Source of the DNA: Epiperipatus broadwayi
Lineage: Eukaryota; Animalia; Onychophora
Assembly (NCBI GenBank): GCA_028023455.1
Contig: JAQFVV010000006.1
Coordinates: 16,988,001 to 17,052,000 of the forward strand
DNA length: 64,000 nt
Reading direction: 5' to 3'
The translations under genes were made by a program, and so were the position numbers. Below, piece after piece: positions 1 to 62,649 of this stretch; position 1 is the stretch's first letter; every line of letters starts with the position of its first letter. Below the pieces are notes generated by a model, which did no database searches, was not told the DNA's origin, and saw only the letters and a program-made list of their open reading frames with translations.

Positions 1-167
1 AAACAATATATAATGTAATTACCGAAACACACAGGCTTATTATATACCTGTGTCTATATATGTAATATATAGGGTATATGAGCACAGACTTTCACATGAC
101 CCACCACTCTCCACACTATCTCATAACACTGATACACTTGAACACATATATGTTGAAAAGATAAATA

Positions 168-218
168 ATCACCAATATACATATTTCATGCTAATCCAGC
201 AATCATCAGTTGGTCCAG
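168..218 (-). ncRNA. Type I hammerhead ribozyme, variant copy A
   Basis: Reverse complement reads ctggaccaa CTGATGA ttgctggattagcat GAAA tatgta TA ttggtgat. Core boxes are intact. The base of stem II is U-U instead of G-C. Confidence 0.75.
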
Positions 219-400
219 GTTACCATCTCTACACATATATGCTGTAAGTGCTCAGATATATATTAAGATAGCCAAACCTCATACTTTAATGGAGGAGTTG
301 GAGTGTGGAGTAGATTGAAGCCTGTCCATTAAAGTGTGAGTTTTGGATATCTTAAAATATATCTGAGCACTTAGAGCATATATGTGTAGAGATGGTAATC

Positions 401-449
401 TGGACCAACTGATGATTACTGGTTTAGCATGAAATAGGTATATTGGTGA
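401..449 (+). ncRNA. Type I hammerhead ribozyme, degenerate copy B
   Basis: tggaccaa CTGATGA ttactggtttagcat GAAA taggta TA ttggtga. Stem II is weakened. Confidence 0.7.
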
Positions 450-456
450 TTATTTA

Positions 457-960
457 TCTTTTTTCTCAAAAGTAACCTTTATTAATCAAAAGATTACAAA
501 AAATTATCGGGTACACTTATCCGTGGAGGATTACAAAGTGTTCAATGTTACAAAGCAAAACAATTATTGACCAGGTTTACAAAGTACGTGCGCTCAATAA
601 CAAATATATCCATAAAAGGGTTGTATAGTTTTGCTTAATGTGTATCTATTTGTGGATGAGCACAATCTGCACTGCCCAAAAACAATCCATAAAGGGGGTG
701 CAGCAGCACATTAGAGTGAAAAAGGTGCTGAAAACATAGACCCTGTACCCTCCCGGCAGGTTTTCCTGGCAGCGGCAATAATCATCACCAGCCTGCACCC
801 ATAAACCAGACCCCCAATGACGCCATCATTAATCCCTGTGGAAGAAATGAGGAGTGCAGACCCTTGCCCGCAAATATTACAACAAAACTCAATTACTGTT
901 ACAAAGATGATATTTCTAGCTGGAGTGTCTATCATCCAGTGATATCATCCTGCACACTGA
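457..960 (-). mobile_element. Possible 3' end of an L1/Tx1-like non-LTR retrotransposon
   Basis: On the minus strand a GC-richer ORF remnant (CNICG...IIAAARK) is followed by a T-rich UTR, AATAAA and an A-run that abuts HHR copy B. Protein similarity is weak. Confidence 0.3.
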
Positions 961-3452: not shown

Positions 3453-3930
3453 TATGAGATAGAGTGGAGAGTGGTGTGAAAGTCTTGTGCTCATATACCC
3501 TATATATTACATATATTGATACAGGTATATAACAAGCCTGTATTTCAGTTATTACAGAGTAGAGATGTCTGCCCATCTCTTGTATATGTATTAAATGGAT
3601 TATGATCTGTACATGGGGGGTCAGATTGACCTTAGATCAACATGGGTGTGATGAGAATCTTGGCCTCAGGGTGGCCTTTGAGCATTCCCAGATTTTCAAT
3701 TGGATGGACAGTTGAAGAGTTGGAGTGTGGAGTAAATTGAAGCCTGTCCATTAAAGTATGAAGATTGGCTATCTTAATATATATGTGTAGAGATGATAAT
3801 CTGGACCAACCGACGATTGCTGGTATTGGTCATTATTTATCCTTTCAACATGTGTTCAAGTGTATCTGTGTTATGAGATAGAGTGGCGAGTGATGTGAAA
3901 GTCTGTACTCATATACCCCTATATTACATA
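3453..3930 (+). mobile_element. HHR repeat family copy C, ~1.1 units, ribozyme core deleted
   Basis: A ~58-bp direct repeat at 3453 and 3872 gives a 419-bp period. The ribozyme is reduced to ctggaccaa ccgacga ttgctgg|tattggt at 3801-3830. Confidence 0.85.
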
Positions 3931-4409: not shown

Positions 4410-7400
4410 ATTAGTTTTTTAAAAATTTCTGCAAATAATGAATATAACTATAAAATGAATGATAGTTTCTCGGCAGACGATAATTTTAGATTTTACAGTT
4501 ACATATTTTTTTTTTTTTTTTGAAACCTGACAGGTATTTGGTAGTTATTTTTCAAATACCCATCAAAAATTTTCAATTTTTTTTTTGTTTTTAATTTGCA
4601 TTATTAAAAAATTTCAACAACACTTTTGTTTATTTGCCGAGAGATCACGTGAGAAGAGATCATGTAATTGCTGAGTGATGAAATTGAAATGGCCCATTGG
4701 GCCAGCCATTTCAACCAATTAATCAAAATGATGTTTTAAAATTTTTTGTCCAACTGAGATTCATTCCAGGAATATTTAGCTTTCGACTACCTGCATTTTC
4801 GTTGCAAGACCCACTCGCCAGGACTAGGATATTTTTCATTTACGATTTTTGTTCGTACAGCATAATATATAATATAATTTCATACGTAATTATAGCTATT
4901 GATGTTTTATGCGATATTATTGTAAAATTATTCCAAAAAGCTGTTTTAAATAATAGTATATTGATAGAAGTTTTATGTACATATGTTTAGAATGCCATCA
5001 CCCCCCCCCCCAAACAACTGAACATCCTTTTCTTTTTAAGTTTATATATCTGGATAGCGAGATTAATGACTCATAAAGCAGTCGAACACTTGTAATTTAA
5101 AATATTTTCTGGCTTATTAAATTGTCTACGTGTAAGCTCAAATATTTATGTAAAATTCCCCGTTGAAAATTTGAATTTGGGGGGGGGGGGAGACACTCAT
5201 AGTTGAGTGCCTTTGCTCACCAGGTATTTAATACAATTTAACACATCACGTATTTAGAATTAATAACAAATCAAATATTAACAGTGAACTTTGACGTTAG
5301 ACGTAAAAATGTGTATATAAATGCACACATACGCTCGAGTTTACTGCTGGAAGCGATTTTTTTTAAAAAAGTGTTCATCTTAAAATTAACGCAAAAGATT
5401 GCTGAGGCGAAGAAAGAATGGCTACATACCCCATTTACCGATCAATAATTGGATGATTATTTGTGCTGGCCGTTGAGTCAGTTACCTGAAGTATATAGTG
5501 CATTTCATTTAGTTTCCTTCACTGCTTGAAATATTTCCATATTTTCTAGTTTCGAACCCTATATCGTGAGCATGGCGGTCAGTGCAGTAGTCAGTACATT
5601 GAGATTTTTCTTTGTTCTTATATATACACGTATAAAATAAACATAGCTTTCATTATTACAAAGAATATAATGTACTGATATTTAGCAAAGAAAACGTGAC
5701 TATTCCATTTTATGTATTACCCGTCTCCCTCATTGATCATAATGAGACTAGCCCATTTCTGGCGATGCTCGCTGCAGTTTATTGTGCCCGAGTTGAAAGA
5801 GTGAACAGGACTAGCTGCAGCTACTCCGTGTACAAAGAAAAGTAGATTTGTTTGTATATTTTTTTCATTTTAAAAAATCCTTTCTTACAAATCTGAAATT
5901 TCAAGCACCTTTTTAAAAAGGTTGAAAACTAGTTGAATTTTAATGACTTAAGACGGATATAGTTTGCGAAATTGTTTTTTAACTTTCGGCTGTAATAAAT
6001 TATTCTAGCCCCCGGATTAACATTATTTTGGATTTAAATTACTCTGTTACTGGAATCTCTTTATACCTGGATGTCTTTTATTTTGGTGAGTGGATTATAT
6101 GCTAGACGTATTGTTAACTTGAGTAAATCATTACCGTTTGCTATTTTAAATGGAGATTATTTATGGGTGTCTTTTATTTAAAGAAATTCGACGGCATCTC
6201 ATTTTTACATAGGCTATATAAATAATCCAAAGGATCTTAATCTGCTTTTAGGTATATAATTGTATGTTTGTGTATCATATATACTAATAAATACTTTCAT
6301 TCGCCGTTGTTGAAAAAAAAAAAAAAAACATCAACAAATTGGGATTTACGTTCATTTTTTTTCTGGTGAGTTTTAAAATTTAATACTACAATCATTTTCG
6401 TTTATGTTCTATATGCGCTTATTAACTTATGTTTACTAAGACTCGCGCGCGCACATATATATACAAGTGTTAATGTAAGCAAATATTCAGGGTTGTGATA
6501 TATTCTCTATATGACAAAATTCTAATGACGAGAGCAAATTATTTTATTTTTAATAGTCCGGGAAATCCGTATCAAGACAAAATATTCTGTAGTGAATTTA
6601 TTATAATCATTTTTGTGGAATTTTTGTCTACAGACGATATAACTGCTTTTCGACGGGTAAATAGATGTAAAAGGAATTTATGAGATCGCTCGAGAATATA
6701 AAATATGTTGGGTAAGCTCATAGACGTGTGTGAATGTATGCTGGATAGTAAATGCATTTCAATATAAAAGTAAAAAAAAAAACATATCATGGAGAAAAGA
6801 AAAAAAAGATAGATTTAACAAAGCGTTAGTAACTATAATATATGCAAACACACGTAATAATTTTTTAGGCTGTTTCTTTTTAGAGTATTTGTCCACAAAT
6901 GCATAATTCTTTTGTTTCTTGCAACCTCATTATGACGACTTAATAGTGTGGATATTATTTCTCCAAATATTAACGGATAACGAACAATACAGAAACCGCA
7001 TTTGACACCTCACTATAATTTTAATAGTTTGTATATATGTGTATGTAATTGCATTTTATACGCATTTGTATATACATGCGCATACATGTACTGTATGTAT
7101 TATAAATTCTTGTGCTTCGTTTTTAAATTTATTTTTAATATTTTATTAAACTTGCAGCTTGTATTTTCCTTTATAAGAGGTTTATTTTTTTTTTATATGG
7201 CGTACTCGTTTCCCCCCCTCCCGAATCTGTTGTTTGCTAACATTTGCAGTACTTTTCTCTCCATTTGGCTTTTTTTTTTCTTGTCAACAGTAAACAAAGA
7301 GAATCCGTAAAGTGTGTTTACATTGTGGTCTGGTCATCTTTTTATTACACGGACTCTTTATGTAGGAACAAGACTTGAATTAAACGAAGATAATCTCTCT

Positions 7401-8119
7401 CATCTTTACTTCTATCTATCCATTACATTTATTTTATTTTTTGTTCCAGAAAAACTGCATCCAAAAGTCTTTTAATGGTTCTTGACAAAGAAATCAATGG
7501 ACCTTATTAGAAAAAAGGGAAAACCCAATGGCTCCATAGAGTAAGGCACTTGATTATAATCAGAGAATTGATCAAATGAGTAAGGGCAGATTTTTGTTTG
7601 AAGTTGAAAGAAGGTCATAAAAAAAAAAAAAAAATCTTCCACAAAGGAACATATGTTAAATCTGTATAGCTGGATACACACTTAGCCTCGGGCTAAAATC
7701 ACTACCATCTGGGATTTAGAGTAGGAGGAGGGTCAAAGAATTAAAACAGTTTTTGAAGAAATAAAAGATCAGCGAGATTTTTGTAAATGTTGTATTTAAT
7801 AATAACAACAACAGCCAAAAAATATTTAACATATATGTAGTAGAAATTTCTGATGTGAGAAAATCGTGTAATGCCATTTTAAAAGCGATGTAAATGTTTT
7901 AAATCTCTCTATGAAAAATCATGTTTACCTAGGGAAGCAATTATGTTTTACTGTTTGTTTTTATTTTAAGAAGTAAAACAAAAAATTAATTTTAAAATTG
8001 GAAAGAAGCCAAGGTTTTAAAAACTATATGCATTTTCTTTATAAAACTGAAATTAGTTTCTTTTATTGATAAAAAAATAAGGCCAATGTTTTCAATGTAC
8101 TAACTATTATTAATCGAAT

Positions 8120-8465
8120 GGCTGGTCGCTTCGAAGATCATGTGACTTTCGAGCACCGGAAGTAATAGTCTATCTGTGAACTATGGATTTTTAGCTCTCG
8201 ATGCCGCCATTTTACTACGGGAAATACTATATTTATTTTTAAAAATGTGCGCGCGTGAATACTAATAGATATATTTCTTAGAATTATCTGTCACGAAAAA
8301 GCAAAAAAATAAAATCTCGCTTATTGTTTTTAATAAACATTATCTTTAGTTATAAGTAACTCATTACGCCGGTACGAGCAAAAGCTTTCTGAATAATTTC
8401 TGATTGAGGAGAGGGGCATTTTGCGTTATATCGCCGTGAATCGCAATCCGATTTCACCGTACAAT
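8120..8465. promoter_or_regulatory. CpG-retaining promoter-like region with ETS and YY1-type motifs
   Basis: accggaagt at ~8155, gccgccatttt at ~8203 and gtgcgcgcgtg. CpG is locally frequent compared with the CpG-poor remainder of the window. Confidence 0.4.
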
Positions 8466-9696: not shown

Positions 9697-9990
9697 TAAT
9701 GTAATTTTCACTACACCACTCAAACAAGGTAGGGACTAGTTAATTATCAATTAAAGTGTAATAATTTGGCTTTATATATATATAATGAACAACGGTAAAA
9801 ATATGTGTAAGAGATTGTGGTCCGGGCCAATTGATGAGTGCTGATTCAGCACGAAATGTGTATCTTGGGGATCATATATCTTTTTCATATATCTTTGGGC
9901 ATATGTTTTATGATTACATCCTTCTCCAAGTTGTTAAAAGTGGATAGAAACCAATCCCTATCTTGTGTGAGAGGAGTGTAGTGAAAATTT
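9697..9990. mobile_element. Divergent HHR-family insertion D with an inverted copy of its 3' end
   Basis: 9800-9890 is homologous to the family core. 9702-9738 is an inverted repeat of 9953-9989. Confidence 0.7.
9822..9874 (+). ncRNA. Type I hammerhead ribozyme copy D (C3U variant)
   Basis: ccaa TTGATGA gtgctg-att-cagcac GAAA tgtgta TC ttgg. Stem II is a perfect 6 bp. Confidence 0.8.
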
Positions 9991-19643: not shown

Positions 19644-19797
19644 TATGTTGAGTGCTGGTTCAGCAAAAAATTGTATTTTAGTGATTGATCATTTATCTTT
19701 TCTACATATGTGTGGTCATGTGTATCAGTGTTATATAAGATAGTGTGTGATAGTTGAAGGGCGCTTGAAAGTCTGTGTTCAAATCCCATATATATAT
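19644..19797 (+). mobile_element. HHR-family fragment G with an eroded ribozyme
   Basis: atgttga gtgctg-gtt-cagca aaaaa ttgta tt ttagtga, followed by sequence matching 59120-59215. Confidence 0.75.
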
Positions 19798-23725: not shown

Positions 23726-26520
23726 GATATTAAATGGGATATTGTAGGACTTTGTGAAGTTAGAAGAAAATGGAGATATACTTTACTATAAACATATATG
23801 TATTGGAAACACAAAGGAGTTGAATTTATTATACATAAAAAGTTGGAACACAATATTTTGCAAATTGATGGCTTATCAGACAGAGTGGCAAGATTAGTTA
23901 TTCAATGTAATGAAAGATATCACATACAGGTAATTCAGGTGAATGCCCCTATAAGTTCCATTGTGATAAAGTAGAGGATTTTTATAAAGATACACACAAT
24001 GCTTTTGAACAGATGAAATAACACTTTAAAATTATTCTGCTAGACTTTAATGTTACAACTAGCAATTTAAAAATGAAAGTGCCATAGATGAATTTGGTTA
24101 TGAGGATAGAAATGAGACAAATCACATACTTGTTGAGTTTGCTGAAAGCAAAGAAATGAATATTATGAATTCTTTTGTTGACCAATAGGAAATAAGTATT
24201 TGAAGATTATAATTTTCTTAAGATTTTAAGAGATAATAATTGATTAGTAAGATGTATGGTATGTGTTAATGGTAGAATAGAACTATCAAATAGGTCAGTG
24301 TTTTCTTGAAGGTATTTTAGTTGTATTTATTGGTTAAACTATTTCCACCATCCAATGTTAATAGGACTATTAAAGATATCTAGTACTTAATATTAAATGA
24401 TTGAAATAGTCCAACAAATAAATGCTATCAAAAAGTCAGTTAACAGTTGATACTCCTACTCTCTAGAAGCACTTCAATGATATCTCCATGGACTTGCTAA
24501 TTGTTTTAAGATATTGACAAATTTTGTGAATGATTTGAACTTAACTATTAGCAAGAAGGGAAATGTTAATCTACTAAGAACTACAACAAGGATAGTTAGT
24601 ATAGCAATGTTTTATACATTTTCAACTAAGATAAGACAATTTATGAAGAAAGGAAAGAATATGAAAATATTTTAAAATAATCCATTAAGAACAATTGAAT
24701 ATTTGGAGTTTTATAAAATAATATAAAAAATGAATTAGTAATAATATAAACAAATGTAACTGAATTAGAATGGAAAGTTATAGAAGTGAATAAAAGTTTC
24801 AAAAATATAAAACATTAGTTATGAAAGAAAAGTTATTTAACAACTAGAAGATGGAACTATTACTAAAAAGGGAGTGATATCATAAGATGTGTTGAAGAAA
24901 TTTATAAAGAATTATATAATAATAAAAAACAAACAAATTAATCACTACAGTTGATGTTCTTCTGAAATGCCAAGTATTTTACATAAAGAAGGTAAAAGTT
25001 CCAGAAAGGTGATGGAATTATTATCGATATTTAAAAAAAAACTGTTGGCGAAACTTTAAACCAAATGTCTAAATGATAAATACATATCAGATGATTGATA
25101 GAATGCAATAGTAATATTGGTATTTTAGAAAGATGATAATTAAAGACTTATAAGTCTTCCATCTGTTCTACACAAAGTCTTCACCAAAATATTTGCAACT
25201 CATCCAAATCCAAAACAACAAGCCAGACATAAACGTGATTTTAGAACAGTGGATAAAATCTAAGTTATAGAATGGACTAATAAATATAATTTGCCATTAT
25301 ACTTTAGGTTTTCAGATTAGCATTTCTACACTGATTAAAGTTTTGGATTATCAACATAGAGATTGAGGTCATGCTCTCAATACTATTTATCAGGATGAAA
25401 CAGCAGTGATCTTATCACATGATGACATGAAGAAGATGAATATTGAGAACAGAGTAATTTTTATATTCCCCAAGTCTTTTACAACAATTTTAGAAGTATT
25501 TTGTGGACTAAAATATGAAATTATTGGGATAAAAATACATATAGATTATTTAGATCATCAAATTTTGTAGTCGATGTAGTTGTTTCTGCAAATAATGCTT
25601 CAGAGTTTCAAAAAACTGTGCAGGAGTTATCAAATGAAAGTCAAGAAATGTTAAATGCATTTTCTCAGAAGGTAATTATGAATTAGAAGAACTTACCAAT
25701 TCTAAATGCTTATTAATATAGATTGGGAACTTCATGGATGGAATTTATCATAGAATGCAGAAATGCTTTCAGTAGAAAAACTTTGTATTAAAAGGAAATA
25801 TATTTACAGGTTTGAAAAGGAAGGTTTTTACTAACTGGATTTTATTAGTTCTTAATTAAAAGAGAAATATGCCTATATGTTTTAAATAAAAAAAAAGAAT
25901 ATATATGATTATAGGAGGTATTAATTGATAAATATAGAATGTAAAAAGAGTAAAATATATAATATTTAATAATATTAAAAAGGTAATAATTAAATAATGA
26001 TTATAAGAAAATTGTAATATTCATGTATATTTATATTATGTTATAGTTCTGAAGAAGATTGCTGGGGTGATCGAAACTGTCATAGAGGGTTGTAATTAAA
26101 GCATTATAAACAGTAATAATGAGCATAAATGATTTAATATTACATTATATGTTTTAAATAGGTTTTTAGTAGATGAATTTTACTGGTTTTTATTTATGTT
26201 TCTGAAACTTTGACATTTAACTTAAGAAAAAACAGAGATTTTATAGCAGCCAATGATAAAGAGATTTATGATTGGAATAACTAATAGGGATTGAAATCAA
26301 AGTATATTAATGAGAGAACAAACAAATATGATTGATATTCCTGAAATAATTAAGAGTTTAATTGGGAATAGATGAACTGTTGCAGTTTTAAATCGGATTC
26401 CAAGAGATTATAATAAGACCTAGAATGAGAGCTCATGTGGGATGGATGGGTGAGCTAATGAAGTTGCAGGTGTCATTTGAAGAAGTGACAGTGGATCAGA
26501 GAAACTATTAAAATGCAAGA
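23726..26520 (+). pseudogene. Heavily decayed RTE-clade LINE (APE endonuclease, RT and 3' end)
   Basis: IKWDIVGLCEVRR, LSDRVARL, IQVIQV.AP, LLDFN and EFAESKEMNIMNSF. RT remnants at ~24800-25850 and the 3' end at 26340-26520. Confidence 0.85.
26041..26087 (+). ncRNA. Penelope-type minimal hammerhead, degenerate
   Basis: CTGAAGA a gattgc-tggg-gtgatc GAAAC t GTC. Stem I is poor. The upstream context is homologous to the 28751-28810 copy. Confidence 0.45.
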
Positions 26521-28750: not shown

Positions 28751-28790
28751 ACGCCTACGTTTCGACTGACCTGCAGTCTTCTTCAGAGCT
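28751..28790 (-). ncRNA. Penelope-type minimal hammerhead
   Basis: Reverse complement reads gct CTGAAGA a gactg-caggt-cagtc GAAA cg TA ggc. Stem III is the palindrome ACGT and stem I is 3 bp. Confidence 0.65.
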
Positions 28791-58064: not shown

Positions 58065-58320
58065 ATTTCGCATATTAAATGGAATATTGTCGATTTTGCA
58101 AAATTAAAATTAAAAAAAAAAAATTCTAAAAATTAAACATATCCTTTTTTTTATTTTTTTAAAATAAATGTATAAATCAGCTGAGGTACAGGTAGATTAG
58201 AATTGATTATGAATATAAATATAGGGGATTTGAACTCATACTTTCAAACACCTTTCAACTATCCACACCATCTCATATCACTGATAGACATGATTACACA
58301 CATGTAGAAAAGATAAATAA

Positions 58321-58370
58321 TCACCAATATATGTATTTCATGCTGAAACAGCACTCACCAGTTGGTCCAG
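58321..58370 (-). ncRNA. Type I hammerhead copy E (A6G core mutation)
   Basis: Reverse complement reads ctggaccaa CTGGTGA gtgctg-ttt-cagcat GAAA tacata TA ttggtga. Confidence 0.75.
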
Positions 58371-59047
58371 ATTATCATCTCTTACACACACATATATAAT
58401 CAGTGCTCAGTTTATATTAAGATAGCAAATCCTCACATATTAGTGGACAGGCTTCAATCTACTTCAACCTCCAACTCTTCAGCCATCCATACTATTGAAA
58501 ATGTGAGATGGAAAGCCCAAATCCCATGCTAATGCCAATATTGTTGTCGTGCCCAAGTTGACCTCAAGTCACTCTGATCCCTCATGTACAGGACCATATC
58601 CATTTAAATACATAGAAGAGAGATAGACAGGATACAGGCTTAATGTGTAATATTTGAAATACAGGTACTCTTCGTATACCTGGAGCATAATTGTAAATAT
58701 AGGGGTTTTGAACTCAGACTTTCAAGCACTTTTTTAACTATCCACCCTGTCTGAATTTAAAACCCCTATATTTACAATTAGGCTCCAGATATATGAAGAG
58801 TGCCCGTATTTCGAATATTACACATTAAACCTGTATCCTTAGTCATACCTCTTCTATGTATTTAAATGGATATGGTCCTGTACATGAGGGGTAAGTGTGA
58901 CTTGAGGTCAACTTGGGCATGACAACCATATCAACATCAGCATGGGATTTGAGCTTTCCATCATCAGGTTTTCAATGGTATGGATGGCTGAAGAGTTGGA
59001 GGTTGGAGTAGATTGAAGTCTGTCCATTATTAAAGTGTGAGGGTTTG

Positions 59048-59139
59048 CATGTGTGAGAGATGATAATCTGGACCAACTGATGAGTACTGGTTCAGCACGA
59101 AATACATATCTTGGTGATTATTGATCTTTTCTACACATG
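59048..59139 (+). ncRNA. Type I hammerhead copy F, intact catalytic core with extended stem I
   Basis: accaa CTGATGA (59077-83) gtactg-gtt-cagcac GAAA (59099-102) tacata TC ttggt. Predicted cleavage is after C59110. Confidence 0.88.
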
Positions 59140-59579
59140 TGTGATCATGTGTATTAGTGATATGAGATAGTGAGGATAGTTGAAAGGTGCTAGAAAGTCT
59201 GAATTCAAATCCTCTATATTTACAATTAGGCTCCAGGTATATGAAGAATGCCTGTATTTCAAATATTATGAATATAAAGTGTATAAATACTTATTTATAT
59301 TGATAGAATATCAAAAAATAAACAGATTAGTTATCAACTAATGTACAGTCGGCCATGCTTGTCAATTGAAACTTTACTTTTGCAATTATGAAAATCAGTT
59401 GAATAAATTTTAAAAACAATATTAAAAATAAGATTAAATTTATAATTTTTTTTTGAAGGGACAAATATATATGCAATTGCTGATAATTCAAGTTTGTGCC
59501 ACAAGAGTGGTTTTGTATGAACCAGATAACATATCAGTATTGCCCTGATATAATTTTGTTTTTTTAAAAAAGTATTGGA

Positions 59580-61787: not shown

Positions 61788-62649
61788 ATGATGAAAGTTT
61801 GGGATCTACCAATGACAAAAGTTGAAGCAGTGAAGGTCCTCCAAAGTAAAAATGTTTTGCCTTCTCGAAGAGTGTGTAAGAATGGCCATGAAACGAGGCT
61901 TTATGTGAATGCAAGGGAACAGTGGAAGTGCAATATTAAGGCTTGTCAATATCACGTAGCACTTCATAATGGAACCTGGTTGGAAGGCTGCAAATTGTCA
62001 TTTGTCACATCCATCCAAATCATTTATTATTGGAGCAAAAACCAATTGACCATGCAATCGGGAAAAAATGATTTGGATTTGAATAGGAATACTGTCGTTG
62101 CGTGGAAGCAATATTTGAGAGTAGCATGTAAAGAAAGTCTGCTCTGTCACCCATCCTGCAAAATTGGAGACCTAGGAAAAATTGTAGAGGTCGATGAAAG
62201 TTTATTTAGTAAACGTAAAAATCAACAGGGAAGAATTCTTCCACAGCAGTGGTTATTTGGCGGTTTATGTAGAGAAACGAGAGTTTCATTGTTGTTATTC
62301 CAAATCGAACAGCATCTGTTCTTCTAGATGTCATTAAAGAACATGTAGCAACAGGATCCACCATATATACTGACTGCTGGAAGGCCTACAAAACAGATGT
62401 ATTGAATGCTGAAGGTTTCCAACACTTCAAAGTGAATCATTTGTACAATTTTGTCGATCCTACGACTGGGGCTCACACACAGAATGTAGAAAGACTTTGG
62501 GGGCTTGTAAAATGTCACAATAAACGAGAGAGGGGACCGCCCAATGTTATCTTGAGTGCTACTTAGACGAATTCATGTGGCGACGATTGCATGATGGTGA
62601 AGATCTATTTGATGCAATATTGCAAGCGATCAATATACCATCAATCTAA
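61788..62649 (+). pseudogene. Merlin / ISXO2-like DDE transposase with two frameshifts
   Basis: VEVDESLF, QQWLFGG, TDCWKAY, VNH..NFVDP.TGAHTQNVERLW and YLDEFMWRR are spread across three frames. Confidence 0.92.

Follow-up and report, generated by a model that had tools for sequence, protein, structure and literature searches.

The sequence at 59048 to 59139 of a 64,000-nucleotide stretch of the Epiperipatus broadwayi genome (the whole of which is here called the window) is best explained as the ribozyme module belonging to an old and mutated copy of a retroelement that is non-coding and non-autonomous, of the type known as an animal retrozyme, a reading to which we give a probability of about 0.8. 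Animal retrozymes are a known kind of element, and no new class is described here. The best-supported reading of their relationships, on the analyses below, makes the element a non-autonomous partner of Penelope-like elements (PLEs). The locus is an unusually clean case of a hammerhead-repeat insertion bounded by target-site duplications (TSDs), with two inverted arms that each exceed one unit and a tail confined to one arm. In combination with 94 related loci, it connects three hammerhead families with the insertion signature of Penelope-type elements and provides sequence-level support, from one large AT-rich genome, for the recent proposal that retrozymes are non-autonomous PLE partners.

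Results

Anatomy of the hammerhead motif

Direct reading of the forward strand from 59072 to 59115 (here named copy F) gives ACCAA-CTGATGA-GTACTG-GTT-CAGCAC-GAAA-TACATAT-C-TTGGT. Helix I, formed by ACCAA/UUGGU, is open, which makes this a type I motif; helix II comprises 6 bp, and helix III is short. The core segments CTGATGA (C3 to A9) and GAAA (G12 to A15.1) occupy 59077 to 59083 and 59099 to 59102, respectively, on either side of helix II, while U16.1 is found at 59109 and H17 is C59110. The predicted cleavage point lies between C59110 and U59111; a previous reading made from the letters of the window (the sequence-only reading) had placed it after C59110, which matches the hammerhead numbering. 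That reading had also described a bulged stem I with further pairing, all of which is present on direct reading: helix I continues beyond a UGG bulge (59069 to 59071) with ATAATC/GATTAT, GAGAGAT/ATCTTTT, and CATGTGT/ACACATG and reaches out to 59048 and 59139 (Table 1).

All canonical core bases (C3 to A9, G12 to A14, and A15.1 to U16.1) are present in copy F and in the consensus sequences of families F and D, as are G10.1-C11.1 and a C or A at H17. Pair counts and the fold of an intact relative (L010:1498-1598), whose minimum-energy structure consists of the long helix I and the helix II hairpin, confirmed the three helices around the core, the open helix I, and the closure of helix II by G10.1-C11.1 that characterize a type I hammerhead. 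The simple core pattern is weak evidence by itself, with a chance expectation of 0.08 per window; a 28-nt family pattern gave three matches at up to three mismatches in the window compared to none in shuffles.

A search of the whole window against Rfam returned nothing at gathering score, and the segment from 58900 to 59300 gave no hammerhead match at an E value of ≤10. The Hammerhead_1 model (RF00163), proposed as a check in the sequence-only reading, has no match here. On the intact relative, it aligned over all 45 model positions but scored 12.3 bits against a gathering score of 34, which is the operational cut-off of one model and not the definition of a ribozyme. By its structure, the motif is a hammerhead, but it is not recognized at the cut-off used by Rfam. 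Across the whole genome, RF00163 detected four loci, all belonging to another hammerhead family. This separate type I family (L001:1501-1544, L002, L003, and L004, located in G000:C809, C6240, C3, and C4) shows the motif CUGAAGAG-ACCC-loop-GGGU-CGAAAC...GUC and passes the model with 35 to 40 bits; no open reading frame (ORF) of ≥100 amino acids was found in the four 3-kb loci.

Table 1. Positions of the insertion, its hammerhead domains, and related copies in the window
Feature	Positions	Strand	Remarks
Left TSD, ATTATGAATATAAA	58206-58219		Identical to 59265-59278
Right TSD, ATTATGAATATAAA	59265-59278		Direct reading
Arm E, inverted, about 1.08 units	58220-58734	-	3' end outward, no tail
Arm F	58735-59218	+	36 nt of the preceding unit plus the full 448-nt unit 58771-59218
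46-nt tail	59219-59264	+	Arm F only; corresponds to nt 1-46 of the next unit
Extended hammerhead domain, copy F	59048-59139	+	Long bulged helix I around the core
Minimal type I hammerhead, copy F	59072-59115	+	Helix Ia ACCAA/UUGGU, core, helix II, helix III
Helix II, copy F	59084-59098	+	6 bp, GUU loop, A59086:C59096 mismatch; consensus G at 59086
Helix III segment AUACAUAU, copy F	59102-59109	+	Ancestral AUACGUAU self-complementary; CpG decayed at 59106
Hammerhead domain of arm E	58290-58396	-	A6 to G; contigs of other organisms have T at 58358, i.e., a restored core
Family A hammerhead domain, copy A	138-243	-	U10.1 and U11.1
Family A hammerhead domain, copy B	375-480	+	U10.1 and U11.1, truncated 3' side
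Family D hammerhead domain, copy D	9796-9902	+	C3 to U (TTGATGA)
Family F copy	19646-19796	+	5'-truncated within the hammerhead; starts in helix II
Diverged unit, 68% identity to F	3498-3925	+	Internal deletion takes out the 3' half of the hammerhead

Wear of the window copies

An alignment of 60 copies yielded a family consensus, against which the consensus quoted in the sequence-only reading from copies A, B, D, E, and F proved correct and copy F itself shows two private changes. A59086 stands where the family has G, so that an A:C mismatch with C59096 breaks the third pair of helix II, and A59106 replaces an ancestral G by CpG decay and breaks the palindrome of helix III. The self-complementary ancestral form, AUACGUAU, has a self-duplex energy of -6.5 kcal/mol, compared to +1.0 kcal/mol for AUACAUAU in copy F; the value for AUGUGCAU is -6.0 kcal/mol. 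The minimum-energy fold of copy F is an alternative structure, with the ribozyme-compatible fold lying 2.6 kcal/mol higher. A rival helix between CUGGACC and GGUUCAG (59072 to 59095) occurs in all F copies and wins in the window copy. Copy F also has no tandem partner on the same strand, each arm of the insertion carrying one hammerhead on opposite strands. Given the helix II mismatch, the lost helix III palindrome, and the absence of a same-strand partner, copy F probably has little or no ribozyme activity. The description of this copy as intact goes too far in view of A59086, A59106, and the energy of the ribozyme-compatible fold.

The remaining window copies are likewise altered. Both copy D, with the core mutation of C3 at 9831, and copy E, with A6 changed to G at 58358 (CTGGTGA; C58358 on the forward strand), failed the structural core test, and in copies A and B the U at 10.1 stands opposite the U at 11.1. 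In a sample biased toward copies resembling those of the window, a strict intactness test was passed by 9 of 54 copies in family F, 3 of 37 in family D, and none of 54 in family A.

Matching sequences were also present in four small public runs from four other organisms, which were kept as contigs and are labelled RNA by guess but may be DNA. Each run contained 4,875 to 8,377 contigs with ≥85% similarity to the window element, and contig depth was highest at the two hammerheads. At 59086, 59110, and 58358, the contigs carry the consensus states G (A>G in nearly all), A, and T, respectively, which indicates that the module is shared beyond this genome and that the deviations in the window are private decay.

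Conservation and covariation of the module

The same 13 core bases are found in the consensus modules of all three families. Since the core was kept although family D has nothing else in common with families F and A, the shape of the hairpin alone is hard to accept as an explanation. Helix III is a self-complementary 8-mer in both of its versions, AUACGUAU and AUGUGCAU. Compensatory changes were seen in helix Ib, where A-U became G-C in 10 D copies, and in helix III at 15.3-16.3, where A-U became G-C in 6 D copies. Between families, several A-U pairs changed to G-U, and one pair was lost in family D, where helix Ia ends in a G:G opposition.

In the proposed register, 91.5% of the cells are paired, compared to 29 to 55% in slid registers; shuffles that keep the content of each column reached 90.9%. 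The covariation score was 0.178 versus 0.170 in shuffles and was reached by 25 of 500 shuffles. Covariation is statistically weak and rests on about two compensatory pairs. This bears on two observations of the sequence-only reading. The difference between taatc/gatta and tggtc/gatca is real at the family level, being present in 10 D copies, but the covariation it was taken to show is weak by the shuffle statistics. The exchange of catgtgt/acacatg for catatatgt/acatatatg carries no weight, as it falls into a self-complementary (TA)n(TG)n stretch of low complexity. The case for a functional module is therefore made mainly by the core kept across families that are otherwise unrelated, together with the two compensatory events.

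Three hammerhead families in the genome

Searching the units against the 5.6-Gb assembly showed dispersed families, each with more than 1,000 first-look candidates, in line with the dispersal predicted from the window. Family F gave at least 1193 first-look candidates, the best matches being 90 to 95% identical to the window copy; the corresponding values were at least 3215 candidates and 87 to 92% for family D and at least 1915 candidates and 95 to 98% for family A. The units measure 448 nt in family F (58771 to 59218), about 476 nt in family A, and about 358 nt in family D, compared to the ~450 to 480 nt proposed in the sequence-only reading. Families F and A are homologous across most of the unit (about 73% identity), whereas family D has only the hammerhead module of 90 to 130 nt in common with them.

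Tandem dimers with two hammerheads 475 to 477 nt apart were found at four loci (L017, L023, L025, and L066), and a family D tandem with a period of 358 was found at another (L040). Head-to-tail repeats a few hundred base pairs long with a hammerhead in each, as is typical of retrozymes, are thus a property of the families and not of the window copy. The element is non-coding and low in GC (38% for the unit), with no ORF above 56 amino acids, which bears out the earlier statement that the unit has no ORF, and TSDs of 10 to 16 bp exceed the 4 bp that retrozyme TSDs surpass. The anatomy of the motif, the module kept across three families, and the tandem dimers elsewhere in the genome support the proposed assignment of the motif to the type I hammerheads and of the family to dispersed, non-coding elements that resemble retrozymes. 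A text search of the literature with the core sequence gave no paper.

Family A is the youngest, with a mean identity of 95% to its own consensus. U10.1 is present in 51 of 54 copies and U11.1 in all 54, and the CpG of helix III is still CG in 21 of the 54. Two loci (L008 and L013, in G000:C7997 and C1984) are nearly identical in sequence and agree in their inverted pair and 16-bp TSD, and we read them as a segmental duplicate or an uncollapsed haplotype of the assembly.

Anatomy of the insertion

The window element spans 58220 to 59264 and is enclosed by perfect 14-bp duplications, ATTATGAATATAAA. Two arms with 81% identity in self-BLAST meet head to head, with no spacer, at 58734/58735, the center of the palindrome lying at 58734.5. 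Each arm begins 36 nt ahead of the unit boundary and continues through one full unit; the 46-nt extension into the next unit is restricted to arm F, in which a direct repeat (58749 to 58820 and 59197 to 59268) has a period of 448. A multimeric or circular template is required by arms that exceed one unit and by the tandem dimers, whose periods are 475 to 477 and 358 nt.

The same architecture recurs in other insertions. Among 29 F loci, we found 21 head-to-head (minus-plus) pairs and no tail-to-tail (plus-minus) pair. The 5' starts at these loci are scattered over unit positions 5 to 434, while the 3' ends fall at two sites ~46 nt apart, nearly every pair having one arm of each type. Ten A insertions bounded by TSDs include 8 inverted pairs, of which 7 carry the tail on one arm only; one-sided tails are recurrent in pairs of both families. 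Exact flanking repeats of 10 to 16 bp surround 10 of 29 A and 16 of 29 F insertions, and a few of them are (TA)n. The ends of insertions never coincide with the predicted cleavage site at unit position 340. All four components of the PLE insertion signature, namely, 5' truncation, a partial tandem, an inverted 5'-truncated copy, and a tail at one end, are displayed by the window element.

No tRNA-like head was detected between 58100 and 59400 using ARAGORN, and the Rfam scan of the window revealed no 7SL or 5S head. Whether or not the 46-nt tail follows, the 3' ends read ...CCTCTATA and bear no poly(A) or microsatellite tail.

5' truncations and head-to-head joints cluster at unit positions 276 to 284 (window 59046 to 59054), a hot spot used by 15 of 54 F arms, a count that is partly a selection effect of the query. 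These positions form the 5' base of the hammerhead hairpin and lie within a (TA)n(TG)n stretch. The same hot-spot joints (58392 with 59049 and 58385 with 59056) occur in the contigs of other organisms, which also contain head-to-head joints at other positions.

Candidate helper elements

The element does not encode the reverse transcriptase and GIY-YIG endonuclease that characterize an autonomous PLE, and since it has no long ORF, it can be at most a non-autonomous PLE partner. In the genome, at least 10239 candidate matches to GIY-YIG were obtained, and all 150 of 150 scored were above the Pfam cut-off. Open frames extend up to 901 amino acids (e.g., C12394:20946730, C6326:998594, and C135:336384), and many matches form opposite-strand pairs 0.7 to 4 kb apart. 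Such an arrangement is the usual appearance of endonuclease-bearing PLEs in animal genomes, and these loci are probably resident Penelope-like elements. No PLE ORFs were found adjoining the fetched copies. The two longest non-repeat frames at the fetched loci (L033 and L049) resemble LINE-type reverse transcriptases by eye.

Discussion

Newt satellite 2, Schistosoma Sm-alpha, and the cave-cricket repeat pDo500 contain type I hammerheads with a weak helix III that undergo double-hammerhead cleavage. Sm-alpha was first described as a SINE/satellite-type hammerhead repeat, and the repeat unit of pDo500 is about 500 bp long, so the unit lengths found here are not unprecedented. The present families resemble these repeats in their type I hammerhead with a weak helix III but show no detectable sequence relation to them outside the core, and the Rfam model built from such sequences gave only 12.3 bits on the intact relative. 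Hammerhead repeats of this sort are also the subject of Forster et al. 1988 (as cited in PMC4209133).

Parallels also exist with metazoan non-LTR retrozymes (Cervera & de la Pena 2020, PMC7229834; Li, Clavereau & Pollet 2026, 10.64898/2026.07.22.740005), whose type I hammerheads likewise sit in short repeats that are AT-rich and non-coding. These repeats are found both in tandem, as dimers or multimers, and dispersed; their TSDs, when present, exceed 4 bp, and PLEs are the proposed helpers. The published range of units for animal hammerhead repeats is 150 to 450 bp (PMC7229834). The F and A units of 448 to 476 nt are at or just above this range and do not constitute a different class, so the impression of an unusually long unit in the sequence-only reading is not upheld. 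The present families differ from these retrozymes in that most of the insertions seen are head-to-head pairs instead of long arrays.

In the hammerheads of PLEs, helix II is long, helix I is short, and helix III is palindromic; these ribozymes act as dimers, and opposite-strand pairing at distances of 100 to 700 bp is frequent (Cervera & de la Pena 2014, PMC4209133). Compared with these pseudo-LTR hammerheads (PMC4209133), the present modules have a similar architecture, with a helix II of 6 bp, a helix Ia of 5 bp, and a small palindromic helix III, and they too occur as opposite-strand pairs 100 to 700 bp apart and in many sequence families per genome. In contrast to the PLE modules, they have no unpaired base between A9 and 10.1, carry a bulged helix I extension of ~25 bp, and are not associated with an ORF for reverse transcriptase and endonuclease. 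PLE insertions are strongly truncated at the 5' side, form partial tandems, and have next to them an inverted copy that is itself 5'-truncated, with a tail of 30 to 40 bp at one end only (Craig et al. 2021, PMC8557442). All of these features are mirrored in the insertions described here, the differences being a tail of ~46 nt and a unit that is a 0.36- to 0.48-kb non-coding RNA instead of a 3- to 4-kb coding element (PMC8557442).

Published work describes the retrozyme as a non-autonomous PLE partner whose palindromic helix III works as a dimer (PMC4209133, PMC7229834, and preprint 10.64898/2026.07.22.740005). Starting from the observed motif, its conservation and family structure, the templates that exceed one unit, and insertion scars of the PLE type, we infer the following route, for which the literature offers precedents (PMC7229834 and preprint 10.64898/2026.07.22.740005). 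Master copies would be transcribed into RNA of more than one unit, in which type I hammerheads would pair as dimers via the self-complementary helix III and cut after H17. The cut would release a unit-length RNA that a tRNA ligase could circularize, and resident Penelope-like elements would supply the reverse transcriptase and GIY-YIG endonuclease for copying and inserting the multimeric or circular RNA.

Two points do not fit a simple account in which cleavage is required: the U:U master of family A and the location of insertion ends off the cleavage site. The spread of family A with U10.1 and U11.1 in its master implies that efficient cleavage may be dispensable for spread. It appears unlikely that the hairpin was kept mainly as a recognition or priming module for retrotransposition, with cleavage dispensable or vestigial in the active lineage. 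Such a role would agree with the composition of the youngest family, which has U10.1 in 51 and U11.1 in 54 of 54 copies, yet gave at least 1915 candidates and still has CG in helix III of 21 copies, as well as with insertion ends unrelated to the cleavage site and with the vigorous proliferation of PLE clades that have no hammerhead (PMC8557442); it is countered by the 13 core bases that all three consensus sequences share although family D is otherwise unlike F and A. For family A (about 476 nt), which reached thousands of copies with U:U in place of the near-universal G10.1-C11.1, we tentatively consider a related possibility, itself doubtful: if its ribozyme is inactive, the hairpin would be a recognition or template-switch module for the Penelope machinery, and self-cleavage and circular RNA would be dispensable. 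The hot spot of 5' junctions at the base of the hairpin would also fit this role. Were the family A ribozyme inactive, the genome would represent a natural experiment on the role of the retrozyme hairpin, and the most useful lead is accordingly the comparison of the canonical families F and D with the young, non-canonical family A, which could test whether mobility needs cleavage.

A LINE-dependent SINE or a satellite-type repeat with an incidental hammerhead, and no partnership with PLEs, would be short, non-coding, and dispersed like the present element, and LINE-mediated insertion, too, typically produces 5' truncation and TSDs of variable length. We nevertheless consider this highly improbable because the element has neither a tRNA-like head nor a poly(A) or microsatellite 3' tail, while head-to-head arms each extending to the 3' end, 46-nt tails on one side, and partial tandems are hallmarks of PLEs and foreign to ordinary target-primed LINE insertion. 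The two inverted arms within one TSD could also call to mind a foldback or MITE-type DNA transposon with long inverted arms and a chance hammerhead-like sequence, an origin that is scarcely credible given TSDs that vary from 10 to 16 bp, an inner junction at a different unit position in each locus, the existence of single-arm and tandem insertions, the asymmetric ends with a tail on one arm, and the motif kept across families that are otherwise unrelated. On these grounds, a chance motif, a MITE, and a SINE were rejected as identities of the element.

Other features of the window and genome

Two minimal hammerhead-like motifs of the form CUGAAGA-A-...-CGAAAC lie 2.7 kb apart at 26049 to 26076 (forward strand) and 28760 to 28786 (reverse strand), with no long ORF and no inverted repeat found between them; the pair may be the remnants of a PLE-type element. 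The sole ORF of ≥150 amino acids in the window, at 61788 to 62327 on the forward strand, encodes 179 amino acids. It had no Pfam match and resembles a fragment of an IS1595/Merlin-type DDE transposase by language-model features (score of 0.94). A search of the genome for COX1 returned 97 matches with in-frame TGA that are distributed among nuclear contigs, a pattern suggestive of numerous insertions of mitochondrial DNA in the nuclear genome.
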